Shown here: piece by piece, positions 1-37,653 of the stretch | Layout of the letters: the number at the start of each line of letters is the position of its first letter | Position numbering within the stretch: the stretch's first letter is position 1 | Origin: Macrostomum lignano | Lineage: Eukaryota | NCBI GenBank assembly: GCA_002269645.1 | Contig: NIVC01001993.1 | Coordinates: forward strand, 62,001-126,000 | Direction of reading: 5' to 3' | DNA: 64,000 nt | Translations under genes and position numbers: made by a program | Notes under the pieces: model-generated | Told to the model about the DNA's origin: nothing | What the model saw: only the letters and a program-made list of their open reading frames with translations | Databases searched by the model: none

Positions 1-3000
1 AGTTCCAGAAATGATAATCCGCTTTGAGCGCAACACAGGGGCAGCTCGACCGCTTCGCCTTCGGTTTCGACGGAGACTGCTACCGCCATGCCTTAGTGCA
101 AATAGTCTTGGAACTCGACTGACTATGCGCTTCACAATGCGGCGGCTTTTCGTTGATGTTCGAGTAATCTTTGATCGACTAATCAGCTTCCTGCGCAACA
201 CTCGTTTCGTGAAGCGTCGCTTCTTAAGAACAAGCCGTCGGACCTTGCGCTCCTGCCGACGCGTCTTTCTGCGCACTGAACTTATTCGACGGCGAAGACG
301 TTGCTTCCGATTGGAGATTCTACGAATTCGGGTCTTTAGGACGCGCCTTCGACGGCGAAGACGTTGCTTCCGATTGGAGATTCTACGAATTCGGGTCTTT
401 AGGACGCGCCTTCGACGGCGAAGACGTTGCTTCCGATTGGAGATTCTACGAATTCGGGTCTTTAGGACGCGCCTTCGACGGCGAAGACGTTGCTTCCGAT
501 TGGAGATTCTACGAATTCGGGTCTTTAGGACGCGCCTTCGACGGCGAAGACGTTGCTTCCAATTGGAGATTCTACGAATTCGGGTCTTTAGCTGGACGCG
601 CCTTCGACGGCGAAGACGTTGCTTCCGATTGGAGATTCTACGAATTCGGGTCTTTAGGACGCGCCTTCGACGGCGAAGACGTTGCTTCCGATTGGAGATT
701 CTACGAATTCGGGTCTTTAGGACGCGCCTTCGACGGCGAAGACGTTGCTTCCGATTGGAGATTCTACGAATTCGGGTCTTTAGGACGCGCCTTCGACGGC
801 GAAGACGTTGCTTCCGGTTGGAGATTCTACGAATTCGGGTCTTTAGCTGGACGCGCCTTCTTTTATACTTCACAATTCGTGAAGTACAGGTCGATAGTTT
901 GTAAGTCAGTCGCTTGATACCTGGTACCAGTATTGATTCGGCTGATCCTGTTTATTATCACAACTTTACTCTTTGTCTTCGAGGACAAGAGTCTTCGCAC
1001 TATTAACTTTTTCCTCTTCAATTGTTTGAGTCGCTCGATGAGATTCTTCGTTTTTTATCGGCTCTCCTGATGCACCGCCTCATTCGACGTCTCCTGGCCT
1101 TGATTCTGCGGATTCTTCGCTTTAGTTGAACGCTGCGTCGTCCAGTGACAAGAACTCGGTGTCTGCTGGCCAGCACTCTGACTTTAGCACGTGCGATTCT
1201 CTTATATATTTTCTTGATTTGTCTCACAGAACGTTTTTTGGCGATTTTTCTGTTAGTAGCAATCATTTTTTTGCTTTTTTCGTCGCTTTCCTTCCTTGTT
1301 TGAGATGATTACCAAGCTGTTTCGTTCTGCTCAGGTACAAAACGCGCTTGGTCAGTCGGATCTTCGCCTGTCGCACTGCGTAGCGCAAGACCCTTGCATT
1401 AGTGGCATTTTACTTTACGATTCGCCTCTGAAATCGTTTCAGCAGCGTGTTAAAACAGACTTTTCTTCTCTGAGTCTTCTTCTTGAGCATTAGCACCCGT
1501 TTCTTGAGTCGCTGTCGCCTGCTCGTAATGCGGCGAATCCTTGCCTTCAACTGTATGTTTCTTCTAGACACTCTCTGAAGCCGTCTTGTATACCTGGCGA
1601 TTTGTCGGGACACCAGATTTGTCTTTCTTTTATTGGGGGTTAGAATGCGCACCGACATTCTAGATTTCTTCTTCTGAATAGTTCCTAATTTGAGCAGAGT
1701 TAGGCGCTTAATAAGAAGTGCTCGCTTATTGCTGATTTTTGCCATGTACTTTTTAACAGTTGCTCTTCTTTGAGTGATGCGTTGAATACTGCGCCTCAGA
1801 TATCGCGTCTGTCTCTTAAGGCGACCAACTCGTCGCTTAGTGACGAGAATTCTTCGAATTATGCGCTCTACTCTTTTGTTAACATTCTTCAACTCTTTTG
1901 CTGCACGCTTGGCTATCTGTCTCAGCTTTCTGCTCTTGCCGATCAGAACAAATGGCTTCTTTATGACCTTCTTTCGCCGGTAAATTCTCCTACCTGCCCT
2001 TGATGTAACCTTCAAATTGTTTTTCTCAATGCGTTCATTGTCTTTTTACCACTAAGCTTCCATTGGATATTCCTGACTAAAATCCTCTTATACAAACGGC
2101 TCACAGTTCGATCTTGTCTAACAATTCTGCGCTGGATTATACGCGCTCTGGCCCTCAAGACTCTGCGCCTGCGAATGGCTCTATTGATGCGTCTTCTCAG
2201 CCGAATTCTTCGCACGCGCAGCCGTCGAATGCGCCGACCGCAAACGGATATTTTCCTCACAATTTGTCTGAAAGCATTTTTTGGTCCTCGTTTTGTCTGG
2301 ACTCGTTTCAGCTGCTTCAACAGCTTTCTGCGACAGATTTTTATCACCGTTACTCGCCGTTTCAGAACGCGAGCGCGATGCGTAATTTTTTTGACACGTC
2401 GCTTCAACACAATTCAGCGTTTCTGAATTCGAAGGATTCTACTTCGGTTGACAAGCTTTCTCCGGGCAGCGCTGGTGACTCTCTTGGCCAGTCTGTGGAA
2501 TGTCTTAACCACTCTAGATACTGTTCGCCTCCTGTGCATACCAGTCAGCCTTCGAGTGACAACAACTCGGCGAGAGCGGCGCCGTCCTTTTGAAGCCGTT
2601 CTTCTTCTGCGCTTGGATTGAACTAGCTTGGTTTTACGCCTCAGCACTCGGCTAGATTGTCTTTCAACCCGGAAAAAGGTTCTGCGACTGACAAGTTTTC
2701 GTTTAATCACGCCTCTAGTAAATCTCCGCTTTTTTCTGTTCAGCTTTCTGAACGTTTTAAGCTGACGTCGAGCCTTTCTTCGCAAAATCGAGCACCGTTT
2801 CCTTAGCGTTTGTCGACGGATAGAGAATTTAATAATTCTCTGCTTTATTCTGACTTTTCTTTGCTTCAAATGGAAGATATTTTTTGTGCACTTCGTAATG
2901 CGTTTTGCCAGCTGGCGCAAGCGCCTATCAATTCGAACAGTCTTACGCGTGACGTTCTCGATAACTGATCCCTTCCTCATGTTTTTGATGATAGCTTTTT

Positions 3001-4958
3001 TGCGTTTGAGCTTCTGCATCCGTTGAATCAATCGCGAGCGCCTGGCCCTGACCAGGGTAATTCGTCGTTTCAACCGTCGCCTCTTCGAGATGATCCTCCT
3101 CAAACGGCGTCTCAGAGAACGTCTACGCCTTCGAATGCGTCGAACAGTGCGCCTCTGCTTCAAACTGATGAGTAGTGCTCTCTTGGCTTTGACAACCAGG
3201 CGCTGAACTTTTTTAATCACTCTTGTACGGCTGACTCTCCGGCTCTTCCGTTGCGCTCGGTGTCGATTTACTTTTGTTCGTCGCCTTCGACTGAGACGCC
3301 TTTTTACTTCTGGACGACGACGTCTACTAATTTTTCAAATCTTCTTATTAGCTTGCGTCTTGTCTGTTTTGCCACCCTCAACTTAGAAATTTGCCTGATT
3401 TTTTTGCCCCGTTTCGACGGTCGACCAGATTTTGTATACCCACGGATCCGGTTTTTCTTCTTGATGAGTTGCCTTCGCTGTCTCAGCACTCTTCGACGGT
3501 GCAGTCGCCAACGCTTGCTGGTTGTTACGGGCCTAATGCGCCTTCTGGGTTGGTATCTAGTACGCCTTCTTAGAAGTCTGAGAACCGGTCGTCGGCTTTT
3601 CAAAATTCGCCTAACAATTCGTCTAATCTGTCTGTTGTACTGTCTACCTCTCCTACTGCCACTCCGGTGCTTTACTTGGCGTAGAATCCTTCTCAGCCTT
3701 CTTCGTAGAGGTTTTCGATAACGCCGAATCAAGCTGCGGACAATTTTACGGCTTCTTCCGCGCCGAACATTGCCTACCCGACTTTGGAAGTGTCTCACAA
3801 GCGCTTTGATTTTGCGCCGTAGTACATGACGTCTTCCACGACCCCTGCACCACTTGTGAATTATCAGTCTACGGAGTTGACGGTCAACCTGAGTAACTAC
3901 GTAACGCCGGGTCTTTCTCTTCTGCTGTCTCAATCTTCTGTCCATCTCTCTTCTCACTTTCCTTTGATATTTCCTCAAAATTCGTCTGGTTATTTGGTCG
4001 ACTCGAGGAGACCTCAGCCGTCTCAGGTCTCGTCTTAGTCTTTGGCATTTGCAGATGGTCTTTCCGTGAATGAACGGCCTTAGCCTGATTGGTTTTCTAG
4101 CGATTCTCTCCGCCTTCTTTGAGATGATACCTTTTCTGAAGAAGGCCTTCTGCACTAAGCGAATCCTTCGATTCGACAGAGGCTTCACTTTCAGCTTTCG
4201 CATAACCTTTCGCTGATACCTCTTCGTAACTTTTCTGAGCTTCCTTTTAAACAACTTCCTCACCTTTTGCACACGGCGCTTAAATCTCGAAATTCGGCGT
4301 CGAATTCTGCGCTGGTGCCGGGTTCTCTTCTCCGCCAGCTGCTGGCGACGAAGCTGCAGCTTCAAGAGGAGCAGTTTCGTGTCGTATTGCGCTTTGTAGT
4401 ACCTGCGGGCAGCCTCCATGATTTTTCGTTTGTTGATGATGCACGCCTGCGACTGTGAAGATTCTGCAAATCAAGCCGATGGTTCGAGCACACTATAGTT
4501 CGTATAAAAAAAGCATTTGAATTGACAACTACCGATGAACTGAACCCTGAACAAACTCTTTAATTGACAAGTTGGTTCTTCAATCCATCTTGCATGGAAG
4601 CGAATGATTTTTAACAAGAATGATACTACTTAAACAGACTACTGAATACGTCACATGAGCATTTGGTATAATTGTGTTTGCGATGGTGTATGCAGATTAT
4701 GCAGCGAAGAATTCAAAGCAATGCAAAGAAAACCCGGTCCCGATTTACTCGATCGATTTGCATCCTTTGGCTTCAGTTATTGGTCACATGTACACAGTAA
4801 CTTGGTTATTAAGATTGGATATTTTTGGACTAATCACCAAATATAATCATATTTAGGTTGTACTTACTCAATTCGGGTGCTTTCACGCTGGCACCGGCAG
4901 CAAAAGTGGCTGCTCCGACGCAGAGCACCAACAATAACAGCAGCGATTGGACTTGCAT
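1..4958 (-). CDS. Giant secreted Arg/Lys-rich (polycationic) protein, adhesive-protein ap1-like KR region; 3'-partial and frame-disrupted in this sequence
   Basis: Exon 1 4958-4868 reads MQVQSLLLLLVLCVGAATFAAGASVKAPEL (signal peptide) followed by A|GTAAGT (phase 1). The acceptor TTTGCAG| before 4463 restores frame: K-SSQSQACIINKRKI-MEAARRYY, joining ORF 3304..4419. ORFs 3304..4419, 2414..3220, 2012..2410, 1410..2015 and 1018..1266, plus an unlisted open minus frame from about 925 to 1, form one continuous R/K-rich polypeptide of about 1500 codons (about 41 R+K in the first 100 aa of ORF 3304..4419, counted by hand). It is broken by frameshifts near 3333, 2020-2047, 1266, 1053 and about 930, and by stops at 2414-2416 (TGA) and 1410-1412 (TAA). 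Confidence 0.8.
287..860 (-). repeat. Coding 63-bp tandem repeat, about 9 copies (21-aa unit RRRVLKTRIRRISNRKQRLRR)
   Basis: Unit starts on the + strand at 287, 350, 413, 476, 539, 605, 668, 731, 794. The only length variants are +3 nt (VQLK), so frame is preserved. Confidence 0.9.
4868..4958 (-). CDS. Signal-peptide exon 1 of the KR-rich gene
   Basis: ATG at 4958-4956, hydrophobic core LLLLLVLCVGAA, small-residue cleavage region, consensus GTAAGT donor at 4867-4862. Not in the ORF track (too short). Confidence 0.8.
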
Positions 4959-6168
4959 CCTGCCGCTGTGCCGCCTACCTTCCTAAGCTTATTCTCAAAG
5001 AATCTCAGCCCTTTTTAGCACTAAGGACACTGTAATATAGACCAGAGTTGAACCAAGAGTCACTGAGCAATGCAACCGAGCAAAACGGTAGACCAATATA
5101 TACTTGAATTCTCTACACTGTCTATCCATAGTCCCATCCGTAGCTTTGAATTTCTGCGTCTACAGAAATATGCGGGCTGGTGGCATGCAAAGTGGCGCAA
5201 CTCACAGTATGTTTAACAGTTACGGTGGTACTTCCAAGTAGCCTCTGTTAGGGACTACAAAAGCAGTTCGTTCCGGATCTGGCTTGTCTGAGCTGCTATC
5301 CCTCTGGCTCTGCCTCTAGCCATGGGGGCTTCACCGCTGTCCTCCAACCAAGCATTCCGCTTCTTCTAGGAGGGATCAGGCACTGCCGAGCAGAAGCAGG
5401 TGTCCAGCAAGATCCTAGGGGTTGCGTTGTTGACTTCTTTCGGACAAAAAAGCCAAGCTGATATAGCTAGGCGAGTCTGGCGGACGCTTGGCTCAACCAG
5501 TTTAGACCTGAATTACAAGTAATCTCTAATGATTGTTGAGCACCGCGCGGCGTCGCCGTCGAACTCTATGAGTCTTTCGGCGATGTCACTAGTATCAAGT
5601 TTTGACTGTCTTCGGTGTGATCCGCTTCTGTAGCTTCTAGAACTAGGCTCGACAGACTTACACGTATCTATAGCCGATGAATCATAATTAGTCTTTTCAA
5701 CTTATCTAAATACATTTCTCAACTTCTCAAGGGGTTTAAATTTCTTGTATTTACGAGCTACTACGTGTGTCCTCCAGGGCTCATATTCTTGACTGCTACT
5801 CATAGTAGCACAATCATCAGTACTTATAGTGGAGTGCATATACATTGACTAGAAATGCCTTAGGGTTCAACTGTTCCAGTTTGAGAGAAAAGGAGCACAA
5901 TGGCAGGTGGCCCACTGAGAATAGCTGACCAGATGTACATTGTAGCTGCTGGGCCAGAGTACACGCCCACGTGTATTTTTATCGACAGCTTCTCACCAAA
6001 ACTTCTTACCCCGGGGGGCATGGTTGGCGGCTAAGTTGCTTAGCAACTCAAGCCAGTTGGCGCTGTTTTAAACTGAGCGTATTCCTATATATTTTACAGC
6101 GGGAGAATTTATACAGTCAAATTAATAATTGAATTTTATTGATAGCTTGTGATAATTTTACGTGCATA

Positions 6169-7601
6169 ATGGCCAAGAAGACTGGTAGAGATACGGAGCC
6201 GTACACTGGATTCGTTGAGGACCGTGAGTAGCTTTCGATTTGATTGAGATTTTAACTCATAAGATAAAAGACGTACGATAGCTAGTACATCTATCGGTCT
6301 TTGGTTTTTGGGAGTTTTCTGGAGTTTTCGCTCTCAAGAGGAATGGTCAAGAGGAAGGGATAGCTACCAACTGGAAGGTCTTTCAGTGGTAGCTCTCCGA
6401 ATGGTCAGGAGGAATGGATAGCTACCAACTGGAAGGTCTTTCAGTGGTAGCTCTCCGAATGGTCAGGAGGAATGGATAGCTACCAACTGGAAGGTCTCTC
6501 AGTGGTAGCTCTCGGAATGGTCAGGAGGAATGGATAGCTACCAACTGGAAGGTCTTTCAGTGGTAGCTCTCCGAATGGTCAGGAGGAATGGATAGCTACC
6601 AACTGGAAGGTCTTTCAGTGGTAGCTCTCCGAATGGTCAGGAGGAATGGATAGCTACCAACTGGAAGGTCTTTCAGTGGTAGCTCTCCCAGCGGTCAGGA
6701 GGGGGGATAGCTACCAACTGGAAGGTCTTTCAGTGGTAGCTCTCCCAGCGGTCAGGAGGGGGGATAGCTACCAACTGGAAGGTCTTTCAGTGGTAGCTCT
6801 CGGAATGGTCAGGAGGAATGGATAGCTACCAACTGGAAGGTCTTTCAGTGGTAGCTCTCCCAGCGGTCAGGAGGGGGGATAGCTACCAACTGGAAGGTCT
6901 TTCAGTGGTAGCTCTCCGAATGGTCAGGAGGAGGGATAGCAACCAACTGGAAGATCTTTCAGTGGTAGCTCTCGGAATGGTCAGGAGGAATGGATAGCTA
7001 CCAACTGGAAGGTCTTTCAGTGGTAGCTCTCCCAGCGGTCAGGAGGAGGGATAGCTACCAACTGGAAGGTCTCTCAGTGGTAGCTCTCGGAATGGTCAGG
7101 AGGAGGGATAGCTACCAACTGGAAGGTCTTTCAGTGGTAGCTCTCCGAATGGTCAGGAGGAGGGATAGTAGCAACCAACTGGAAGGTCTTTCAGTGGTAG
7201 CTCTCCGAATGGTCAGTAGGAGGGATAGCAACCAACTGGAAGGTCTTTCAGTGGTAGCTCTCCGAATGGTCAGGAGTATTCCGGGATAGCTACCAATTGG
7301 AACGGCCTAGTGGTTAAATCGCTGACTGGAGCACCAACGCAAGAAACGTACTTTCTCTACAGCGCAGCTGGAATTCTACGGACCGCCAAAGAGCCTGTTC
7401 TACACTACGTCGAGCGGGATGCAGTGCAAGCGTTATTACTGCAGCACCTGCGGCCCGCTGCACCGGGTTCAACAGTGCTCATCTCAGCGCACCATGGAGT
7501 ACATGAACGGGACCACGCTGCCAGACGCTCTATGGAAAAGTCGTCAAGCCTATCGCATTGACGAAGCGGTTCAGCAGAGCAGGCCGCAGGGCAATCAGTA
7601 G
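6169..7601 (+). CDS. Small 97-aa Cys-containing protein, two exons (6169-6223, 7363-7601), function unknown
   Basis: ATG GCC AAG AAG ... GAC C|GTGAGT (phase 1) joins CTTTCTCTACAG|CG to give MAKKTGRDTEPYTGFVEDPQLEFYGPPKSLFYTTSSGMQCKRYYCSTCGPLHRVQQC...QGNQ*. Codons are GC3-rich and an AT-rich 3' region follows. Confidence 0.6.
6355..7295. repeat. 58-bp minisatellite, about 16 copies, each containing a ~40-nt hairpin
   Basis: Unit GATAGCTACCAACTGGAAGGTCTTTCAGTGGTAGCTCTCCGAATGGTCAGGAGGAATG, period 58 (6359 to 6417). Lies inside the intron of the 97-aa gene. Confidence 0.95.
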
Positions 7602-9935: not shown

Positions 9936-10499
9936 TTCGATCAGAAATTTTCCCGTGACAGTACATGCATCGTGGCTAAGAAATTGCTTGATGCTAAAGG
10001 GATTAAATATTCGAAAAACATGCTTTTTTGCAAAGGTCAAGCAGCTCTTTCGACTTGAAATGCATCGTAAGAATGCTAGCAGAAAAACTGACTGGTTGAA
10101 TTCTGATTCTGAAATAGATTGCATCACAATACACTTTATTTATCGTCTGTGTACTGGCTGAATTTGACACTCAATTGAATTGCGTCACAGCTTTGAGTGT
10201 GAAAGCATAGCGCAGTACTGAATTTATATTACGTAACCATTATAGACACTGGTACTGACTTGCCTAAGAAATTGATTATGTCATAACTGCTTCGTGAGAC
10301 TTTTTACTCTACCTGACTTGGTGTGAGTGTTGAATTATATAAGTGGTACAACATCACTGATAACTTCGATGAGAGCTAGCCTAGAGCTGAACAGACCAGA
10401 CTGCTAATGCAGCGACCTAGGTTCGAATCTAAGTAGTTTAAAAGTAGTAGTGTAAATTTTTTTATTAAAAGGTTTTATTAAAGGACTAAATAAAAACAC

Positions 10500-19470: not shown

Positions 19471-22400
19471 TTAAGAATGGCCCTGCAATCCTTTAAGAGT
19501 GGCCCTGCAATCCTTTAAGAATGGCCCTGCAATCCTTTAAGAATGGCCCTGCAATCCTTTAAGAATCGCCCTGCAATCCTTTAAGAATGGCTCTGCAATC
19601 CTTTAAGAATGGCTCTGCAATCCTTTAAGAGTGGCCCTGCAATCCTTTAAGAATGGCCCTGCAATCCTTTAAGAATGGCCCTGCAATCCTTTAAGAATGG
19701 CCCTGCGATCCTTTAAGAATGGCCCTGCAATCCTTTAAGAATGGCCCTGCAATCCTTTAAGAGTGGCCCTGAATCCTTTAAGAGTGGCCCTGCAATCCTT
19801 TAAGAGTGGCCCTGCAATCCTTTAAGAATGGCCCTGCAATCCTTTAAGAGTGGCCCTGCAATCCTTTAAGAGTGGCCCTGCAATCCTTTAAGAATGGCCC
19901 TGCAATCCTTTAAGAGTGGCCCTGCAGTCCTTTAAGAATGACCCTGCAATCCTTTAAGAATGGCCCTGCAATCCTTTAAGAATGGCCCTGCAATCCTTTA
20001 AGAGTGGCCCTGAATCCTTTAAGAGTGGCCCTGCGATCCTTTAAGAGTGGCCCTGCAATCCTTTAAGAATGGCCCTGCAATCCTTTAAGAGTGGCCCTGA
20101 ATCCTTTAAGAGTGGCCCTGCGATCCTTTAAGAATGACCCTGCAATCCTTTAAGAATGGCCCTGCAATCCTTTAAGAATGGCCCTGCAATCCTTTAAGAA
20201 TGGCCCTGCAATCCTTTAAGAATGGCCCTGCGATCCTTTAAGAGTGGCCCTGCAATCCTTTAAGAATCGCCCTGCAGTCCTTTAAGAATGGCCCTGCGAT
20301 CCTTTTAAGAATGGCCCTGCAATCCTTTAAGAATGGCCCTGCGATCCTTTAAGAGTGGCCCTGCAATCCTTTAAGAATGGCCCTGCAATCCTTTAAGAGT
20401 GGCCCCGCAATCCTTTAAGAATGGCCCTGCAATCCTTTAAGAATGGCCCTGCAATCCTTTAAGAATGGCCCCGCAATCCTTTAAGAGTGGCCCTGCAATC
20501 CTTTAAGAATGGCCCTGCAATCCTTTAAGAATGGCCCTGCAATCCTTTAAGAATGGCCCTGCAATCCTTTAAGAATGGCCCCGCAATCCTTTAAGAGTGG
20601 CCCTGCAATCCTTTAAGAATGGCCCTGCAATCCTTTAAGAATGGCCCTGCAATCCTTTAAGAATGGCCCTGCAATCCTTTAAGAATGGCCCTGCAATCCT
20701 TTAAGAATGGCCCTGCAATCCTTTAAGAAAGAATGGCCCTGCAATCCTTTAAGAATGGCCCTGCAATCCTTTAAGAATGGCCCTGCAATCCTTTAAGAAT
20801 GGCCCCGCAATCCTTTAAGAATGGCCCTGCAATCCTTTAAGAATGGCCCTGCAATCCTTTAAGAAAGAATGGCCCTGCAATCCTTTAAGAATGGCCCTGC
20901 AATCCTTTAAGAATCGCCCTGCAATCCTTTAAGAAAGAATGGCCCTACAATCCTTTAAGAATGGCCCTGCAATCCTTTAAGAAAGAATGGCCCTGCAATC
21001 CTTTAAGAATGGCCCTGCAATCCTTTAAGAATGGCCCTGCAATCCTTTGAGAATGGCCCTGCAATCCTTTAAGAATGGCCCTGCAATCCTTTAAGAATTG
21101 CCCTGCAATCCTTTAAGAATGGCCCTGCAATCCTTTAAGAATGGCCCTGCAATCCTTTAAGAATGGCCCTGCAATCCTTTAAGAATGGCCCTGCAATCCT
21201 TTAAGAGTGGCCCTGCAATCCTTTAAGAATGGCCCTGCAATCCTTTAAGAATGGCCCTGCAATCCTTTGAGAATGGCCCTGCAATCCTTTAAGAATGGCC
21301 CTGCAATCCTTTAAGAATGGCCCTGCAATCCTTTAAGAATGGCCCTGCAATCCTTTAAGAGTGGCCCTGCAATCCTTTAAGAATGGCCCTGCAATCCTTT
21401 AAGAAAGAATGGCCCTGCAATCCTTTAAGAATGGCCCTGCAATCCTTTAAGAATGGCCCTGCAATCCTTTAAGAATGGCCCTGCAATCCTTTAAGAATGG
21501 CCCTGCAATCCTTTAAGAATGGCCCTGCGATCCTTTAAGAATGGCCCCACAATCCTTTAAGAAAGAATGGCCCTGCAATCCTTTAAGAATGGCCCTGCAA
21601 TCCTTTAAGAAAGAATGGCCCTGCAATCCTTTAAGAATGGCCCTGCAATCCTTTAAGAATGGCCCTGCAATCCTTTAAGAATGGCCCTGCAATCCTTTAA
21701 GAAAGAATGGCCCTGCAATCCTTTAAGAATGGCCCTGCAATCCTTTAAGAATGGCCCTGCAATCCTTTAAGAATGGCCCTGCAATCCTTTAAGAGTGGCC
21801 CTGCAATCCTTTAAGAATGGCCCTGCAATCCTTTAAGAATGGCCCTGCAATCCTTTAAGAAAGAATGGCCCTGCAATCCTTTAAGAATGGCCCTGCAATC
21901 CTTTAAGAATGGCCCTGCAATCCTTTAAGAATGGCCCTGCAATCCTTTAAGAATGGCCCCGCAATCCTTTAAGAATGGCCCTGCGATCCTTTAAGAATGG
22001 CCCCGCAATCTTTTAAGAATGGCCCTGCAATCCTTTAAGAATGGCCCCGCAATCCTTTAAGAATGGCCCCGCAATCCTTTAAGAAAGAATGGCCCTGCAA
22101 TCCTTTAAGAATGGCCCCGCAATCCTTTAAGAAAGAATGGCCCTGCAATCCTTTAAGAATGGCCCTGCAATCCTTTAAGAATGGCCCTGCAATCCTTTAA
22201 GAATGGCCCTGCAATCCTTTAAGAAAGAATGGCCCTGCAATCCTTTAAGAATGGCCCCGCAATCTTTTAAGAATGGCCCTGCAATCCTTTAAGAATGGCC
22301 CCGCAATCCTTTAAGAATGGCCCCGCAATCCTTTAAGAAAGAATGGCCCTGCAATCCTTTAAGAATGGCCCCGCAATCCTTTAAGAAAGAATGGCCCTGC

Positions 22401-22491
22401 AATCCTTTAAGAATGGCCCTGCAATCCTTTAAGAATGGCCCTGCAATCCTTTAAGAATGGCCCTGCAATCCTTTAAGAAAGAATGGCCCTG
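19471..22491 (+). repeat. 22-bp satellite, left array, about 137 copies
   Basis: AAGAATGGCCCTGCAATCCTTT; +4-nt (AAAG) variants appear from about 20730 inward. Confidence 0.97.
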
Positions 22492-23446
22492 CTTGAAGAT
22501 TTTCTTTTTGCCTCGTCACCAGTCGCTCCTATTTAATCTCGCAAGTCCTTATTATTTGCCTTAATTTACGAGTATAATAAACAGTAGCGCATGTAAAAAG
22601 GCTTGCTCATATATTTTAGCCACTTTCATTCATACTCTGACTGCTTAGTTTCGTACGTTTGAATTTTTATACATACCAATTCATCCTATCGCTCAGCTCC
22701 CTGCATAGGCTCTGCCATCTAGTTTTTTGTCTTCTTAACATCCGACTGCTCCAATGGAAGAGTTTTACCGCCAAATTTATTCAGTTTGCAAAGCTGGCTA
22801 CGCGCCTCTGTTAATATTTGCCTTTTTGCCAAAATGAAACGCTATAAATGTTGACTTGATGCGTACATACTACTTAAAGCCCATAAAATCAATATCAGCG
22901 TCTGTTTGGAGTTTTTCGGATAAATTAAGGATTAGTTTAGTGAGCTGGCTGCTGCATAAGTGATTTTTGGTTTTATCGACCGGTGCCTCCGGTGCTTCCA
23001 GTGTCCGCGGCTTTTGTTTACCTGTAGCTGATTCTACAGATAAGCTAGTTTGGCGAATTCAATTTACTGTAGTGTTTCAAATACATCAGCATGCGCAACA
23101 AAATTTATATTGAAATCGCCTGTTGCCGATCAATGAATTGCTGTTCAATCTCACAAATCCGTCATTTTGATTGTCTAATTTTTACGATTGAAGAAAATAA
23201 TGATGAAAGAAACAGTTTATTTCTGGTGAAGCTATTGCTTCTTAAATTTTTAAAATACTATACATTCCTTTTATTATTTATATTTATAACATGCAAATTT
23301 TCAGTGCAAAACGAGAAGATTTCGATAGTCAAATGCAGATAATATTTACAGATGAAATACAAAATACGAAATGTTTTAACATACTGTATATGCATCTAGC
23401 AGTCAGTGATTATACAGTCATTGACAGAGAAAAGCGCACATGATGC

Positions 23447-25363
23447 TCAGTCGACCTCCTCAACGGTGGGTCCTCCAGCTCGCTGATGTCCAGGCTGAGG
23501 CTGACCAGACTGCTGCTGCTGCTGATGAAGCTTGGCCATGATTGGCGAGCAGCGGCTGCTGAGTTGCTGCTGCTGGTGGGCAATCTCGTCCTTCTCGGCA
23601 GTCTGGTTGTTCTCCAGCCAGGAAATCACTTGCTCGCAGGCGGCCACCACCTCGGCGGAGTCCTTCTCGCCCAGCTTGTCCTTGCAGTCGTTGGCAGCCT
23701 GCTTGTACTGGAAGGCGAGCGACTCGAGCTGGTTGCGGGCCGCCAGGCGCTCGCGGTGCCGCTCGTCCTCCTCGCGGAACTTCTCCGCATCCCGCACCAT
23801 CCTGTCGATCTCGTCCTTCGAGAGGCGGCCCTTGTCGTTCGTGATCGTGATCTTCTCCTCCTTGCTGGTGCTCTTGTCTTTCGCCGACACCACCAGGATT
23901 CCGTTGGCGTCAACGTCGAAGGTCACCTCGATCTGAGGGACTCCGCGCGGCGCTGGCGGGATCCCGTCCAGGTTGAACCGGCCCAGCAGGTGGTTGTCTC
24001 TGGTGAGCGCTCGCTCGCCCTCGAACACCTGCACCGTGACGCCGCTCTGGTTGTCCGAGTAGGTGGTGAACGTCTGCGTCGCCTTGGTCGGGATGCGGCT
24101 GTTCCGCTCGACAATCTTGGTCATCACCCCGCCGGCGGTCTCGATGCCGAGAGACAGCGGCGCCACATCCAGCAGCAGCAGGTCGTCGATCTTGTCGTCC
24201 TTCACGCCAGTCAGCACCGCAGCCTGCACGGCAGCTCCGTAGGCGACCGCCTCGTCCGGGTTGATCGACTTGTTCAGCGTCCGACCGCCCATGAATTCTT
24301 GCAGCAACTTCTGCACCCTCGGGATCCGGGTTGATCCGCCAACCAGCACGATCTCGTTGATGTTGCTCTTGTCCATCTTGGCGTCTCTCAGCGCTCGCTC
24401 CACCGGCTCCATCGTCTGGCGAAACAGGTCGGCGCACAGCTCCTCGAATCGAGCCCTGGTGACGCTCGTGTAAAAATCGATGCCCTCGAACAGCGAGTCA
24501 ATCTCGATGCTCGCCTGTGCCGAGCTGCTCAGCGTTCGCTTCGCTCGCTCAGCCGCAGTCCGAAGGCGTCTCACAGCCCGAGCGTTGCCGCTCATGTCCT
24601 TGCGGTACTTGCGCTTGAACTCTTGCATCAGGTGCTCAACCAGACGATGATCAAAGTCCTCGCCGCCGAGGTGGGTGTCGCCGGCGGTTGCGCGCACCTC
24701 GAACATGCTGCCCTCCGACACTGTCAGGATGGACACGTCGAACGTGCCGCCTCCCAGGTCAAAGATGAGAATGTTCTTCTCACCCTGCAGGTTCTTGTCC
24801 AGACCGTAGGCCAGTGCCGCAGCAGTCGGCTCGTTCACGATGCGCAGCACGTTCAGTCCGGCAATCGCCCCGGCATCCTTCGTTGCCTGTCGCTGACTGT
24901 CGTTGAAGTAGGCCGGCACTGTGATCACCGCGTCAGACACCTTCTCGCCGAGGTAGGCCTCCGCCGTCTCCTTCATCTTGGTGAGAACCATGGCGGAGAT
25001 CTCCTCCGGGTAGAAGCTGCGCCTCTCGCCCATGTACTGCACCTCAATCTTGGGTCGGCCTCCGTCGTTCGTCACCTTGAATGGCCACAGCTTCATGTCC
25101 CTCTGCACCGTCTCGTCTCCGAACTTTCGTCCGATCAGACGCTTCGCGTCAAACACTGTGTTGTCCGGATTCATCGCCACCTGGTTCTTTGCAGCGTCGC
25201 CTACCAGCCTCTCCGTGTCCGTGAAGGCCACGTAGCTGGGAGTGGTTCGGTTGCCCTGGTCATTGGCAATGATCTCCACTTTGCCTGCCTGGAACACGCC
25301 AACGCACGAGTACGTGGTGCCCAGGTCAATGCCGATTGCAGGACCGTTGTTGCTCTTACCCAT
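23447..25363 (-). CDS. hsp70: Heat shock protein 70, cytosolic, intronless, heat-inducible type, 638 aa
   Basis: [32 protein letters not shown] signatures; C-terminal GPTVEEVD; no introns. Confidence 0.99.
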
Positions 25364-25520
25364 GTTGTCGATCGATTAATTCGCACTTGCTTGATATACG
25401 AGTAGTAGCGTAGGCTGATGCGTCTGTTGCCTTGATGGCTTGCTTGGCTTTGCTGTTCGTTTCGTTCGCCTTGCGATCCGATTTCAATTCTTGCCTCCAA
25501 TTCTGGGCCGGGTGCTTCTC

Positions 25521-25616
25521 TTTTATAGACTCCGGCCCGTTTCTAGAAGTTTCCCGCACCATCCTCCGCGAATGCGCCGCGAGCTATTTTTAGCTCGTTC
25601 TGGAAATTTCTCGAAA
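25521..25616 (-). promoter_or_regulatory. hsp70 promoter of the left copy: two heat-shock elements and a TATA box
   Basis: Mirror image of 27069-27164. Confidence 0.9.
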
Positions 25617-26050
25617 AAAGAATTGCTTGACAAATTTTACCATTTGCGTCTATTTCGCCTACTTTAAGTAGAAAGTAACAAACGTGTAGTCTAATACAAA
25701 CATATTCTTACAAACATATTTACAATGTTAAAACCTAAAGGGATCAAGAAATTCTGTGGAAAATGGGATTAATGAATATTAGCGATAGTTTTGGTTGCGA
25801 AGAATTTATTTTGTTATTCAATATTTATTTGTTAAAACGATCAGGTCTTTCAGATTAACTGATTCTGGAAATCGGCGATATGTATAGAAATAGAACAAGC
25901 ATTGCAAGCACAAAACAAAAGTCAGAACAGTGCTATGTTTTAAAGTCGACTCAATCTTCTGAAGTGAAACAAAAGGAAAATACAAACAGCTTGTCAGTTG
26001 AATAATTTTTTAGTTAATGCTTATTAAGTGCACAAAACTAAATGGCAAAA

Positions 26051-26170
26051 AAGACAACAGCATTTGGTATTCCCAGGCGGTCACCCATCCAAGTACTAAC
26101 CAAACCCAACGTTGCTTAACTTCGGTGATCAGACGAGAACCGGTGTTTTCAACGTGGTATGGCCGTTGCC
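26051..26170 (-). rRNA. 5S rRNA: 5S rRNA, left copy
   Basis: Reverse complement of 26515-26634. Confidence 0.95.
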
Positions 26171-26514
26171 AATTACCGAGAGCACTCAACTTCAATTTAT
26201 ACTTCGCTACCGCCGCATTGTGTCAGCAGGCAATACGGTAACAAGTAATATGGCCCATTTTGTATCGACCAGGAGCCAATAGCCTCCTCGCCATAGCCTC
26301 CTGTCATTATCTGATTGTCGATTCAACGCAGAGAGAAATATCAATTAAAGATTGGTCAGTTGGTCAGGATTGGATATTCATCATCCCGATAAGGCGAGGA
26401 GGCTATTGGCTCCTGGTCGATACAAAATGGGCCATATTACTTGTTACCGTATTGCCTGCTGACACAATGCGGCGGTAGCGAAGTATAAATTGAAGTTGAG
26501 TGCTCTCGGTAATT

Positions 26515-26634
26515 GGCAACGGCCATACCACGTTGAAAACACCGGTTCTCGTCTGATCACCGAAGTTAAGCAACGTTGGGTTTGGTTAGTACTTGGATGG
26601 GTGACCGCCTGGGAATACCAAATGCTGTTGTCTT
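26515..26634 (+). rRNA. 5S rRNA: 5S rRNA, right copy
   Basis: GGCAACGGCCATACCACGTTGAAAACACCGGTTCTCGTCTGATCACCGAAGTTAAGC...TTAGTACTTGGATGGGTGACCGCCTGGGAATACCAAATGCTGTTGTCTT. Helix I (GGCAAC/GTTGTC), ACGTTG/CAACGT and TTTGGT/ACCAAA all pair. TATAAAT at about -30; T6 Pol III terminator at 26633-26638. Confidence 0.95.
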
Positions 26635-27068
26635 TTTTGCCATTTAGTTTTGTGCACTTAATAAGCATTAACTAAAAAATTATTCAACTGACAAGCTGTT
26701 TGTATTTTCCTTTTGTTTCACTTCAGAAGATTGAGTCGACTTTAAAACATAGCACTGTTCTGACTTTTGTTTTGTGCTTGCAATGCTTGTTCTATTTCTA
26801 TACATATCGCCGATTTCCAGAATCAGTTAATCTGAAAGACCTGATCGTTTTAACAAATAAATATTGAATAACAAAATAAATTCTTCGCAACCAAAACTAT
26901 CGCTAATATTCATTAATCCCATTTTCCACAGAATTTCTTGATCCCTTTAGGTTTTAACATTGTAAATATGTTTGTAAGAATATGTTTGTATTAGACTACA
27001 CGTTTGTTACTTTCTACTTAAAGTAGGCGAAATAGACGCAAATGGTAAAATTTGTCAAGCAATTCTTT

Positions 27069-27164
27069 TTTCGAGAAATTTCCAGAACGAGCTAAAAATA
27101 GCTCGCGGCGCATTCGCGGAGGATGGTGCGGGAAACTTCTAGAAACGGGCCGGAGTCTATAAAA
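27069..27164 (+). promoter_or_regulatory. hsp70 promoter of the right copy: HSE 27069-27088, HSE 27131-27145, TATAAAA 27158-27164
   Basis: tTTCgaGAAatTTCcaGAAc (4 nGAAn units) and gGAAacTTCtaGAAa (3 units) directly upstream of the TATA box. Confidence 0.9.
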
Positions 27165-27321
27165 GAGAAGCACCCGGCCCAGAATTGGAGGCAAGAATTG
27201 AAATCGGATCGCAAGGCGAACGAAACGAACAGCAAAGCCAAGCAAGCCATCAAGGCAACAGACGCATCAGCCTACGCTACTACTCGTATATCAAGCAAGT
27301 GCGAATTAATCGATCGACAAC

Positions 27322-29238
27322 ATGGGTAAGAGCAACAACGGTCCTGCAATCGGCATTGACCTGGGCACCACGTACTCGTGCGTTGGCGTGTTCCAGGCAG
27401 GCAAAGTGGAGATCATTGCCAATGACCAGGGCAACCGAACCACTCCCAGCTACGTGGCCTTCACGGACACGGAGAGGCTGGTAGGCGACGCTGCAAAGAA
27501 CCAGGTGGCGATGAATCCGGACAACACAGTGTTTGACGCGAAGCGTCTGATCGGACGAAAGTTCGGAGACGAGACGGTGCAGAGGGACATGAAGCTGTGG
27601 CCATTCAAGGTGACGAACGACGGAGGCCGACCCAAGATTGAGGTGCAGTACATGGGCGAGAGGCGCAGCTTCTACCCGGAGGAGATCTCCGCCATGGTTC
27701 TCACCAAGATGAAGGAGACGGCGGAGGCCTACCTCGGCGAGAAGGTGTCTGACGCGGTGATCACAGTGCCGGCCTACTTCAACGACAGTCAGCGACAGGC
27801 AACGAAGGATGCCGGGGCGATTGCCGGACTGAACGTGCTGCGCATCGTGAACGAGCCGACTGCTGCGGCACTGGCCTACGGTCTGGACAAGAACCTGCAG
27901 GGTGAGAAGAACATTCTCATCTTTGACCTGGGAGGCGGCACGTTCGACGTGTCCATCCTGACAGTGTCGGAGGGCAGCATGTTCGAGGTGCGCGCAACCG
28001 CCGGCGACACCCACCTCGGCGGCGAGGACTTTGATCATCGTCTGGTTGAGCACCTGATGCAAGAGTTCAAGCGCAAGTACCGCAAGGACATGAGCGGCAA
28101 CGCTCGGGCTGTGAGACGCCTTCGGACTGCGGCTGAGCGAGCGAAGCGAACGCTGAGCAGCTCGGCACAGGCGAGCATCGAGATTGACTCGCTGTTCGAG
28201 GGCATCGATTTTTACACGAGCGTCACCAGGGCTCGATTCGAGGAGCTGTGCGCCGACCTGTTTCGCCAGACGATGGAGCCGGTGGAGCGAGCGCTGAGAG
28301 ACGCCAAGATGGACAAGAGCAACATCAACGAGATCGTGCTGGTTGGCGGATCAACCCGGATCCCGAGGGTGCAGAAGTTGCTGCAAGAATTCATGGGCGG
28401 TCGGACGCTGAACAAGTCGATCAACCCGGACGAGGCGGTCGCCTACGGAGCTGCCGTGCAGGCTGCGGTGCTGACTGGCGTGAAGGACGACAAGATCGAC
28501 GACCTGCTGCTGCTGGATGTGGCGCCGCTGTCTCTCGGCATCGAGACCGCCGGCGGGGTGATGACCAAGATTGTCGAGCGGAACAGCCGCATCCCGACCA
28601 AGGCGACGCAGACGTTCACCACCTACTCGGACAACCAGAGCGGCGTCACGGTGCAGGTGTTCGAGGGCGAGCGAGCGCTCACCAGAGACAACCACCTGCT
28701 GGGCCGGTTCAACCTGGACGGGATCCCGCCAGCGCCGCGCGGAGTCCCTCAGATCGAGGTGACCTTCGACGTTGACGCCAACGGAATCCTGGTGGTGTCG
28801 GCGAAAGACAAGAGCACCAGCAAGGAGGAGAAGATCACGATCACGAACGACAAGGGCCGCCTCTCGAAGGACGAGATCGACAGGATGGTGCGGGATGCGG
28901 AGAAGTTCCGCGAGGAGGACGAGCGGCACCGCGAGCGCCTGGCGGCCCGCAACCAGCTCGAGTCGCTCGCCTTCCAGTACAAGCAGGCTGCCAACGACTG
29001 CAAGGACAAGCTGGGCGAGAAGGACTCCGCCGAGGTGGTGGCCGCCTGCGAGCAAGTGATTTCCTGGCTGGAGAACAACCAGACTGCCGAGAAGGACGAG
29101 ATTGCCCACCAGCAGCAGCAACTCAGCAGCCGCTGCTCGCCAATCATGGCCAAGCTTCATCAGCAGCAGCAGCAGTCTGGTCAGCCTCAGCCTGGACATC
29201 AGCGAGCTGGAGGACCCACCGTTGAGGAGGTCGACTGA
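27322..29238 (+). CDS. hsp70: Heat shock protein 70, cytosolic, intronless, heat-inducible type, 638 aa (protein identical to the left copy)
   Basis: Same signatures and EEVD terminus. Confidence 0.99.
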
Positions 29239-30203
29239 GCATCATGTGCGCTTTTCTCTGTCAATGACTGTATAATCACTGACTGCTAGATGCATATACA
29301 GTATGTTAAAACATTTCGTATTTTGTATTTCATCTGTAAATATTATCTGCATTTGACTATCGAAATCTTCTCGTTTTGCACTGAAAATTTGCATGTTATA
29401 AATATAAATAATAAAAGGAATGTATAGTATTTTAAAAATTTAAGAAGCAATAGCTTCACCAGAAATAAACTGTTTCTTTCATCATTATTTTCTTCAATCG
29501 TAAAAATTAGACAATCAAAATGACGGATTTGTGAGATTGAACAGCAATTCATTGATCGGCAACAGGCGATTTCAATATAAATTTTGTTGCGCATGCTGAT
29601 GTATTTGAAACACTACAGTAAATTGAATTCGCCAAACTAGCTTATCTGTAGAATCAGCTACAGGTAAACAAAAGCCGCGGACACTGGAAGCACCGGAGGC
29701 ACCGGTCGATAAAACCAAAAATCACTTATGCAGCAGCCAGCTCACTAAACTAATCCTTAATTTATCCGAAAAACTCCAAACAGACGCTGATATTGATTTT
29801 ATGGGCTTTAAGTAGTATGTACGCATCAAGTCAACATTTATAGCGTTTCATTTTGGCAAAAAGGCAAATATTAACAGAGGCGCGTAGCCAGCTTTGCAAA
29901 CTGAATAAATTTGGCGGTAAAACTCTTCCATTGGAGCAGTCGGATGTTAAGAAGACAAAAAACTAGATGGCAGAGCCTATGCAGGGAGCTGAGCGATAGG
30001 ATGAATTGGTATGTATAAAAATTCAAACCTACGAAACTAAGCAGTCAGAGTATGAATGAAAGTGGCTAAAATATATGAGCAAGCCTTTTTACATGCGCTA
30101 CTGTTTATTATACTCGTAAATTAAGGCAAATAATAAGGACTTGCAAGATTAAATAGGAGCGACTGGTGACGAGGCAAAGAGAAAATCTTCAAGGAGATCC
30201 TCA

Positions 30204-33200
30204 AGGATTGCAGGGCCATTCTTAAAGGATTGCAGGGCCATTCTTAAAGGATTGCAGGGCCATTCTTAAAGGATTGCAGGGCCATTCTTAAAGGATTGCA
30301 GGGCCATTCTTAAAGGATTGCAGGGCCACTCTTAAAGGATTGCAGGGCCATTCTTAAAGGATTGCAAGGCTATTCTTAAATGATTGCAGGGCCATTCTTA
30401 AAGGATTGCAGGGCCATTCTTAAAGGACTGCAGTGCCATTCTTAAAGGATTGCAAGGCTATTCTTAAAGGATTGCAGGGCCATTCTTAAAGGATTGCAGG
30501 GCCATTCTTAAAGGACTGCAGGGCCATTCTTAAAGGATTGCAAGGCTATTCTTAAAGGATTGCAGGGCCATTCTTAAAGGATTGCAGGGCGATTCTTAAA
30601 GGACTGCAGGGCCATTCTTAAAGGATTGCAAGGCCATTCTTAAAGGATTGCAGGGCAATTCTTAAAGGATTGCAGGGCCACTCTTAAAGGATTGCAGGGC
30701 GATTCTTAAAGGATTGCAGGGCCATTCTTAAAAGGATTGCAGGGCCACTCTTAAAGGATTGCAGGGCCATTCTTAAAGGATTGCAGGGCCATTCTTAAAG
30801 GATTGCAGGGCAATTCTTAAAGGATTGCAGGGCCACTCTTAAAGGATTGCAGGGCGATTCTTAAAGGATTGCAGGGTCATTCTTAAAGGATTGCAGGGCC
30901 ATTCTTAAAGGATTGCAGACCATTCTTAAAAGGATTGCAGGGCCACTCTTAAAGGATTGCAGGGCCATTCTTAAAGGATTGCAGGGCCACTCTTAAAGGA
31001 TTGCAGGGCCATTCTTAAAGGATTGTAGGGCCATTCTTAAAGGATTGCAGGGCCATTCTTAAAGGATTGCAGACCATTCTTAAAGGATTGCAGGGCCATT
31101 CTTAAAGGATTGCAGGGCTATTCTTAAAGGATTGCAGGGCCATTCTTAAAGGATTGCAGGGCCACTCTTAAAGGATTGCAGGGCCATTCTTAAAAGGATT
31201 GCAGGGCCATTCTTAAAGGATTGCAGGGCGATTCTTAAAGGATTGCAGGGCCATTCTTAAAGGATTGCAGGGCCATTCTTAAAGGATTGCAGGGCGATTC
31301 TTAAAGGATTGCAGGGCCATTCTTAAAGGATTGCAGGGCCACTTTTAAAGGATTGCAGGGCGATTCTTAAAGGATTGCAGGGCCATTCTTAAAGGATTGT
31401 AGGGCCATTCTTAAAGGATTGCAGGGTCATTCTTAAAGGATTGCAGACCATTCTTAAAGGATTGCAGGGCCACTCTTAAAGGATTGCAGGGCCATTCTTA
31501 AAGGATTGCAGGGCGATTCTTAAAGGATTGCAGGGCCATTCTTAAAGGATTGCAGGGCCATTCTAAAAGGATTGCAGGGCGATTCTTAAAGGATTGCAGG
31601 GCCATTCTTAAAGGATTGCAGGGCCATTCTTAAAGGATTGCAGGGCCACTCTTAAAGGATTGCAGGGCCATTCTTAAAAGATTGCAGGGCCATTCTTAAA
31701 GGATTGCAGGGCCACTCTTAAAGGATTGCAGGGTGATTCTTAAAGGATTGCAGGGCCATTCTTAAAAGGATTGCAGGGCCACTCTTAAAGGATTGCAGGG
31801 CCATTCTTAAAGGATTGCAGGGCCATTCTTAAAGGATTGCAGGGCAATTCTTAAAGGATTGCAGGGCCACTCTTAAAGGATTGCAGGGCGATTCTTAAAG
31901 GATTGCAGGGTCATTCTTAAAGGATTGCAGGGCCATTCTTAAAGGATTGCAGACCATTCTTAAAAGGATTGCAGGGCCACTCTTAAAGGATTGCAGGGCC
32001 ATTCTTAAAGGATTGCAGGGCCACTCTTAAAGGATTGCAGGGCCATTCTTAAAGGATTGTAGGGCCATTCTTAAAGGATTGCAGGGCCATTCTTAAAGGA
32101 TTGCAGACCATTCTTAAAGGATTGCAGGGCCATTCTTAAAGGATTGCAGGGCTATTCTTAAAGGATTGCAGGGCCATTCTTAAAGGATTGCAGGGCCACT
32201 CTTAAAGGATTGCAGGGCCATTCTTAAAAGGATTGCAGGGCCATTCTTAAAGGATTGCAGGGCGATTCTTAAAGGATTGCAGGGCCATTCTTAAAGGATT
32301 GCAGGGCCATTCTTAAAGGATTGCAGGGCCATTCTTAAAGGATTGCAGGGCCATTCTTAAATGATTGCAGGGCGATTCTTAAAGGATTGCAGGGCCATTC
32401 TTAAAGGATTGCAGGGCCACTTTTAAAGGATTGCAGGGCGATTCTTAAAGGATTGCAGGGCCATTCTTAAAGGATTGTAGGGCCATTCTTAAAGGATTGC
32501 AGGGTCATTCTTAAAGGATTGCAGACCATTCTTAAAGGATTGCAGGGCCACTCTTAAAGGATTGCAGGGCCATTCTTAAAGGATTGCAGGGCGATTCTTA
32601 AAGGATTGCAGGGCCATTCTTAAAGGATTGCAGGGCCATTCTAAAAGGATTGCAGGGCGATTCTTAAAGGATTGCAGGGCCATTCTTAAAGGATTGCAGG
32701 GCCATTCTTAAAGGATTGCAGGGCCACTCTTAAAGGATTGCAGGGCCATTCTTAAAAGATTGCAGGGCCATTCTTAAAGGATTGCAGGGCCACTCTTAAA
32801 GGATTGCAGGGCCATTCTTAAAGGATTGCAGGGCGATTCTTAAAGGATTGCAGGGCCATTCTTAAAAGGATTGCAGGGCCACTCTTAAAGGATTGCAGGG
32901 CCATTCTTAAAGGATTGCAGGGCCACTCTTAAAGGATTGCAGGGCCATTCTTAAAGGATTGCAGGGCCACTCTTAAAGGATTGCAGGGCCATTTTTAAAG
33001 GATTGCAGGGCGATTCTTAAAGGATTGCAGGGCCATTCTTAAAGGATTGCAGACCATTCTTAAAGGATTGCAGGGCCACTCTTAAAGGATTGCAGGGCCA
33101 TTCTTAAAGGATTGCAGGGCCACTTTTAAAGGATTGCAGGGCGATTCTTAAAGGATTGCAGGGCCATTCTTAAAGGATTGCAGGGCCACTTTTAAAGGAT

Positions 33201-34799: not shown

Positions 34800-37653
<2,854 letters not shown>

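Follow-up and report, generated by a model that had tools for sequence, protein, structure and literature searches.

What kind of protein is encoded by a locus whose minus strand can be read, over more than 4.4 kb, as a chain made up largely of arginine and lysine, and is the gene in a state to produce it? The question is raised by the left end of a 64,000-nucleotide stretch of Macrostomum lignano DNA (contig NIVC01001993.1, positions 62,001 to 126,000; hereafter the window), where a signal-peptide exon lies upstream of a large coding exon that leaves the window at position 1. Based on the evidence described below, the locus is understood as the 5' portion of a gene whose product would be giant, secreted, polybasic and helix-prone, and we consider it probable that this gene is a deeply diverged paralogue of the Mlig029036 family, which combines an Arg/Lys array with a WSC domain.

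Gene structure and relatives

Read directly on the minus strand, exon 1 extends from 4958 to 4868 (91 nt), with its ATG at 4958-4956 and the product MQVQSLLLLLVLCVGAATFAAGASVKAPEL. The signal peptide, MQVQSLLLLLVLCVGAATFAAGAS/VKAPEL, was called by eye from an h-region and small residues at -3/-1. The exon ends in phase 1 at a donor A/GTAAGT (slash, exon boundary; GT 4867-4866), and an intron of 404 nt (4867-4464, GTAAGT...TTTGCAG) leads through the acceptor TTTGCAG/ (AG 4465-4464) in frame into exon 2, which starts at 4463. The preliminary description of this DNA had proposed exactly that junction, from 4868 to 4463, and it holds in phase 1, with the same A/GTAAG donor present in a relative whose gene model is transcript-based. 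Exon 2 opens with a conserved basic head of ~165 aa (4463-3967), which includes an IHGxxICKC motif and is the sole part of the locus with detectable homologues. Rfam and tRNA scans of positions 1-5000 gave no match.

What these homologues are was determined by an exhaustive HMMER (phmmer) scan in which the 385-aa first piece of the translation was compared with 1.84 billion cluster representatives. Two clusters only were returned (P0001, E=2e-21, 55% identity; P0002, E=2e-18, 61% identity), both of them Macrostomum lignano "WSC domain-containing proteins". From 5.8 billion proteins, a profile built on the conserved region recovered the same two clusters and nothing else, at scores (E=5e-62 and 3e-59) that are partly self-matches because the profile contained one M. 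lignano head. No match came from the concatenated 1,442-aa translation in a word-indexed search, whose list of 8,000 candidates was probably saturated by low-complexity words. The family members (UniProt A0A1I8GNH5, A0A1I8F1Q9 and A0A1I8HKC0; NCBI PAA63193.1 and PAA48566.1) are predicted and uncharacterised, and a literature search for the gene identifier retrieved no papers. Their architecture consists of signal peptide, WSC domain (PF01822, E=3e-18 in the M. lignano relative), basic head of ~165 aa and giant Arg/Lys array. Judged by its sequences, the family is limited to Macrostomum and set apart from the adhesive protein ap1; the class as such, that of secreted flatworm polycations, is known, and the family itself is annotated only as uncharacterised WSC proteins.

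The correspondence to the window gene starts at the signal peptide, which in the relatives reads MRLWLLLLILAVWAAMSANGAS/L and aligns with that of the window, both ending in ...GAS. Exon 1 of the relatives also closes in phase 1, at a donor A/GTAAGC of which A/GTAAG is common with the window, and their basic head is 54-61% identical to window 4463-3967, the IHGxxICKC motif included. At the M. lignano locus L002 (NIVC01004115.1), exon 1 occupies 10001-10088 (88 nt, phase 1, compared to 91 nt, phase 1, in the window), and the exon phases are 1, 1-1 and 1 for signal peptide, WSC domain and giant exon. The WSC exon is thus symmetric, and its loss leaves the reading frame intact. Direct reading of the window intron together with tblastn of the M. 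lignano WSC protein shows the intron to be without a WSC exon or remnant of it, and the same tblastn search found no WSC match anywhere in the whole window. Over 221 codons of the head compared between the window and L002, the proportion of nonsynonymous differences (pN) is 0.38 and that of synonymous differences (pS) is 0.80, the latter saturated, which indicates an old divergence under purifying selection.

Homologous signal peptide, phase-1 splice and basic head, and a giant single exon of Arg/Lys with Ile/Leu/Val that is interrupted in the window as assembled, are what the window gene shares with the Mlig029036 family. It differs in being without the WSC exon, in its flanking genes and in the saturation of synonymous sites. 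The arrays differ also: that of the window is mostly non-repetitive, with a 63-bp/21-aa unit in one part, and its R+K content is 42%, while at least 37 copies of a 249-bp/83-aa unit, and R+K of 57%, are found in the relative. At L002, 37.6 copies of the 249-bp unit (99% identity) reach the contig end and form an uninterrupted array ORF (open reading frame) of 2,687 codons; the window array, 4463-1, carries five frameshifts and two stops.

As regards the surroundings in M. lignano, a Rogdi-like gene (~2100-7000 (+) in L002 and in its twin locus L001) is found upstream of the WSC/Arg-Lys gene, and L002 contains an EGF_CA-repeat gene nearby (1-550 (-)). The Rogdi neighbour is not found in the window, where tblastx matches were to simple repeats only. 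Counting against our assignment of the locus as a gene is that its own sequence is not in the protein collections. Exact-product look-ups for the HSP70 of the window and for a 371-aa ORF of the window found neither on record.

Composition, coding signal and helicity

The conceptual minus-strand translation comprises 1,559 aa after the signal peptide, with R 29.1%, K 13.1% and D+E 2.1%, hence 42% R+K, in good agreement with the ~40% Arg+Lys and few acidic residues previously noted; I+L+V amount to 24.6%, G to 2.1% and P to 1.0%. The hydrophobic residues had been described as regularly spaced, and this is true in one sense. The mean helical hydrophobic moment at 100 degrees exceeds that of shuffled sequences at z=7.7, which makes the hydrophobic spacing alpha-helical, and AlphaFold2 predicts an almost wholly helical structure with one long helix at residues 2-90 (predicted local distance difference test score, pLDDT, of 80-93; overall mean pLDDT only 61). 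A 7-residue period, by contrast, is restricted to positions 285-860, which hold a tandem array of 63-bp units; the rest of the sequence shows no significant heptad or coiled-coil periodicity, and Pfam returned only sub-threshold, coiled-coil-like noise for all translated pieces.

Is the translation real, or is the locus a non-coding, minisatellite-like sequence with frames left open by biased composition? The window gives some reason to ask. It is rich in tandem repeats, minisatellite arrays of extreme strand skew occurring at 10.4-12.5, 17.6-18.5, 41-44, 45-52, 56-57 and 63.3-63.8 kb, and such arrays give long accidental ORFs in several frames and on both strands, so that ORF length alone means little here. 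The 63-bp array has its antisense strand open as well, for 297 codons; the Arg-rich 297-aa ORF at 11-904 (+) is that antisense reading, an artefact and no second gene. Outside 285-860, however, tandem repetition is absent. The remaining ~3.6 kb are non-repetitive, with a coding path nearly free of stops, and the open stretches of 385, 317 and 306 codons are longer than any in 300 dinucleotide shuffles, where the longest averaged 134 codons and reached at most 228. A codon-position signature, position 1 rich in A/C and position 2 rich in G/T, is common to all pieces of the path. An ungapped BLOSUM scan located further copies of the 21-aa array unit at 1556 and 1131, scoring 69 and 57 compared to a shuffle maximum of 56, and the occurrence of one motif in pieces that now belong to different frames is the trace expected of a once-continuous frame; an hmmsearch with an HMM of the 21-aa unit gave no match. 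With signal peptide, splice phase and head moreover kept in a transcribed and translated M. lignano gene, and with pN well below pS, an accidental origin of the open frames is barely credible.

Integrity of the gene

The preliminary description had envisaged one exon of >4.4 kb encoding at least ~1500 aa. That part cannot be maintained for the DNA as assembled, in which the ORF from the signal peptide has 416 codons and stops at 3306-3304. From 4463 to 1 on the minus strand, the coding path suffers seven interruptions, five of them frame changes and two in-frame stops. It begins with 4463-3307 in the signal-peptide frame, where the basic head is followed by a first Arg/Lys-rich stretch (3966-3304, TAA 3306-3304 at its end). 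A first frameshift interval (3334-3307), in which one base is apparently missing and at the start of which there is an A5 run (3335-3331), leads to the second Arg/Lys-rich piece in a shifted frame (3334-2417, 306 codons, R+K 45%). The TGA at 2416-2414 has the same frame on either side (...RIQKR-stop-IVLKRR...) and separates it from the third piece (2413-2015, 133 codons, R+K 41%). Past a frameshift interval at 2045-2015 with an A5 run, the fourth piece (2045-1413, 211 codons) includes the motif copy at 1556; it is closed by the TAA at 1412-1410, beyond which the same frame runs on from 1409 to 1266. The fifth piece (1308-1021, 96 codons) includes the motif copy at 1131 and follows a frameshift interval at 1308-1266 with A6 and A7 runs. 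The sixth (1054-866, 63 codons) is placed between the frameshift intervals 1054-1021, with an A6 run, and 951-866. The seventh (951-1, 317 codons, R+K 48%) is open at the left edge of the window and includes the 63-bp array (285-860, 9 copies, 97% identical, unit LKTRIRRISNRKQRLRRRRRV).

Short introns were considered as the cause of the frame changes. On inspection, Arg/Lys-type translation abuts every break on both sides, and both stops sit inside a continuing frame. The sole plausible GT...AG pair (1414-1377) would lead into an acidic frame ending in a stop, and the intron reading was dropped.

Two explanations of the interruptions are left to be weighed. The one we favour, and hold to be the likelier, is that the window copy was recently disabled or truncated, which would make it a pseudogene of recent origin or a shortened member of a multi-copy family. 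Stops in continuing frames speak for it: the TGA at 2416-2414 and the TAA at 1412-1410 are substitutions, not indels, and are hard to blame on the assembly. Only 2 stops occur along the ~1,170 out-of-frame codons, in a sequence where 4.6% of random substitutions would create a stop, and their small number implies that the decay is recent. Two stops and five indels in ~3.3 kb suggest, as a rough estimate, a neutral divergence of roughly 1%.

The alternative holds that assembly errors account for the frameshifts, and perhaps for the stops, in an intact gene encoding a functional secreted polycation of >1,500 aa that continues past the window. Several observations tell in its favour and weigh against decay. 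Runs of A5-A7 are present in 4 of the 5 frameshift intervals, and 4 of the 5 shifts are of the one-base-missing type, a pattern which fits replication slippage and fits homopolymer under-calling in long-read assemblies as well. At the two M. lignano loci, arrays 99.2% identical to each other look very different as assembled: L001 (12771-18475) is split over all three frames by more than 10 frame changes, while L002 (12975-22855) keeps 2,687 codons open. Either contig terminates within the array, which shows how such genes break assemblies and annotations. That the out-of-frame pieces are nearly stop-free is likewise what an intact gene would give. On the other side, apart from the two substitutions, the interval 951-866 has no homopolymer run, and the palindrome arms elsewhere in the window (3.8 kb, HSP70/5S) show 99.9% agreement without gaps across 14 runs of >=5 per arm. 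This internal control is a weak one, since systematic errors would match in both arms and the HSP70 coding sequence has only one run of >=5. Misreading of the four A-run frameshifts is the less likely case, and even then the two nonsense codons would cut the protein. We therefore consider a wholly intact gene unlikely, if a good deal less so than an accidental origin of its frames.

Comparison with ap1 and ap3

Whether the locus belongs to a known adhesive protein is the obvious next question, as the preliminary description had named ap1 among the candidates. In Mlig-ap1, Lys/Arg-rich repeats extend over >2,700 aa behind the signal peptide, and the Lys/Arg regions A-C are arranged around a core of C-type lectin, vWD-C8-TIL and ~17 EGF_CA domains (PMC6410801). 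Published repeat epitopes are SRKPRRKNRKSRKP (56x), KNNKRRVRKARKNN (25x) and KSRKVN (84x) (PMC6410801). Heparin blocks attachment, and the Lys/Arg regions are proposed to act by charge on anionic glycans (PMC6410801). In later papers, the flanks of ap1 and ap3 are described as Gly-Arg-Lys(-His-Ser) low complexity. Our comparison with ap1 rests on the epitopes, probe primers and published composition. Genus, signal peptide and thousands of very basic Lys/Arg residues are the features in common with the window protein, as are footprint presence and the proposed charge interaction with anionic glycans.

Could the window show the N-terminal Lys/Arg region A of this cohesive glue protein, from Mlig-ap1 itself or from the orthologue of a sister species? 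The likeness of ap1, which likewise opens with a signal peptide and a very long Lys/Arg-rich repeat region, would allow it, and the 3' end of the gene is beyond the left edge of the window, which makes lectin, vWD and EGF exons possible downstream and out of view, a circumstance that speaks against separating the two proteins. Sequence relationship, however, was not detected. Scans of all frames of the window, L001 and L002 that tolerated up to 4 mismatches found no copy of any ap1 epitope, 0 of 18 ap1 probe primers match the window, and Pfam finds no lectin, vWD or EGF domain in the translated pieces of the window. The only homologues of the head are WSC-domain proteins on other contigs, the ap1 core contains no WSC, and in the footprint dataset discussed below the WSC protein is entered apart from the curated Mlig-AP1. 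Composition differs as well: ap1 repeats are built of Gly/Ser/Pro/Asn with Arg and Lys, and its flanks are G/R/K or S/R/K low complexity, whereas in the window protein Gly accounts for 2% and I/L/V for 25%, and the predicted structure is helical. Identity with ap1 is very unlikely on this evidence, and our assignment to the WSC/Arg-Lys-array family is preferred.

Regarding architecture alone, the best match for the WSC-less window copy is of the ap3 type (Mile-ap3, Tmed-ap3; PMC9229212), which has a signal peptide and a giant basic low-complexity region with no other domains. Yet ap3 is composed to 88% of G/R/K/H/S, compared to ~51% G+R+K+H+S in the window protein (G+H+S ~9%, I+L+V ~25%), and homology is not detectable.

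A further suggestion, that dibasic sites release cationic peptides from the chain, is unsupported. Repeated peptide units with spacers were not found, and the 281 dibasic sites in the 1,559 aa of conceptual translation, about one per 5-6 residues, imply that processing would shred the chain.

Footprint proteome and proposed function

What the family does is best approached from published proteomics of the footprints that the animals leave on a substrate. Dataset S2 of Wunderer et al. 2019 (PMC6410801), sheet footprints_Trypsin_intact_1, lists the peptides FSYAGVQNGNECR, LGSVTPAACAAQCFK and VQTCGGFWR under a 280-aa WSC entry with a pI of 11.8. All three match the WSC domain of PAA63193.1 at every residue. 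It follows that the M. lignano relative is translated and occurs in substrate-deposited material. The earlier assignment of the locus to secreted polycations as a general class is borne out. Presence in footprints is not specific, given that histones and other cellular proteins are on the same sheet (PMC6410801), and to that extent the finding counts less for an adhesive or mucus role. The Arg/Lys array itself would escape tryptic proteomics. The footprint peptides would fit an extracellular polycation that binds anionic glycans.

In the mechanism that we propose, intact family members would take the shape of long, cationic and amphipathic helices that are exported via the secretory pathway, to be stored or released. 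Multimerisation could be mediated by the head, whose helix is long and confidently predicted and which has three conserved cysteines. Sulfated or carboxylated glycans of mucus or adhesive secretions would be bound or condensed by the array through charge, as proposed for the Lys/Arg regions of ap1, and the WSC domain would add carbohydrate recognition of the lectin type. Expression of the window copy, should it occur, would give no more than a WSC-less secreted basic protein of 416 aa.

A different site of use must be considered. Reproductive secretions typically include fast-evolving, lineage-restricted secreted repeat proteins, and the family could on that account belong to the prostate secretion or seminal fluid and not to adhesive or mucus material. 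In M. lignano, the transcript RNA815_80.4, which is specific to the prostate, does encode two WSC domains (PMC4490696). It is built differently, having two such domains and no Arg/Lys array reported, and the peptides of the relative were obtained from footprints on glass, though other secretions could land there. A reproductive role is, on balance, improbable, and deposition with adhesive or mucus material remains the use we prefer. WSC-bearing secreted proteins may, as RNA815_80.4 (PMC4490696) illustrates, be a broader theme in Macrostomum glands.

Neighbouring features of the window

Next to the Arg/Lys locus, ~1.4 kb upstream of the signal-peptide exon, is a 58-bp tandem repeat (6341-7302, 16.6 copies, 92% identity). 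An inverted duplication at 20001-32642 contains two identical intronless HSP70 genes, at 23447-25363 (-) and 27322-29238 (+), as well as one 5S rRNA gene per arm, at 26052-26170 (-) and 26515-26633 (+). The arms of the palindrome core, 22492-26295 and 30193-26390, align without gaps and with 4 mismatches, at 99.9% identity. The encoded HSP70 shows 92-96% identity to M. lignano HSP70 proteins and at most 85% to anything else, which by itself assigns the DNA to Macrostomum, M. lignano or a species close to it. A likely cell-surface gene is found at 34800-37638 (+), its product comprising a signal peptide, weak V-set and Ig_3 matches, a Pro/Thr-rich tandem-repeat stalk, a transmembrane segment and a cytoplasmic tail.

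Implications

The window copy is probably a WSC-less, decaying variant, and it matters mainly as a pointer to the family, which is the real lead. A lesson for annotation is immediate: genes of this kind are routinely truncated or missed, by contig ends, by indel fragmentation and by low-complexity filtering. Tentatively, and with less confidence than we have in the gene assignment, we suggest that the family represents a second class of giant secreted polycations in Macrostomum. Its members would be WSC-headed proteins of at least 2,700 aa and 57% Arg/Lys, forming amphipathic helices unlike the Gly-rich flanks of ap1 and ap3, deposited on the substrate and acting by charge in a cohesive or mucus-condensing manner. 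If this is true, the WSC-less paralogue in the window shows that diversity within the family arises when a symmetric exon is lost and when repeats turn over, and the family could offer a new template for polycation-based biomaterials. The current model of temporary adhesion in flatworms involves two or three proteins, with the charge of Lys/Arg on anionic glycans central to both attachment and release. A separate, even more basic and helical family, some members of it with a lectin-like WSC domain and one already visible in a published footprint proteome, would be a missing player in that model.

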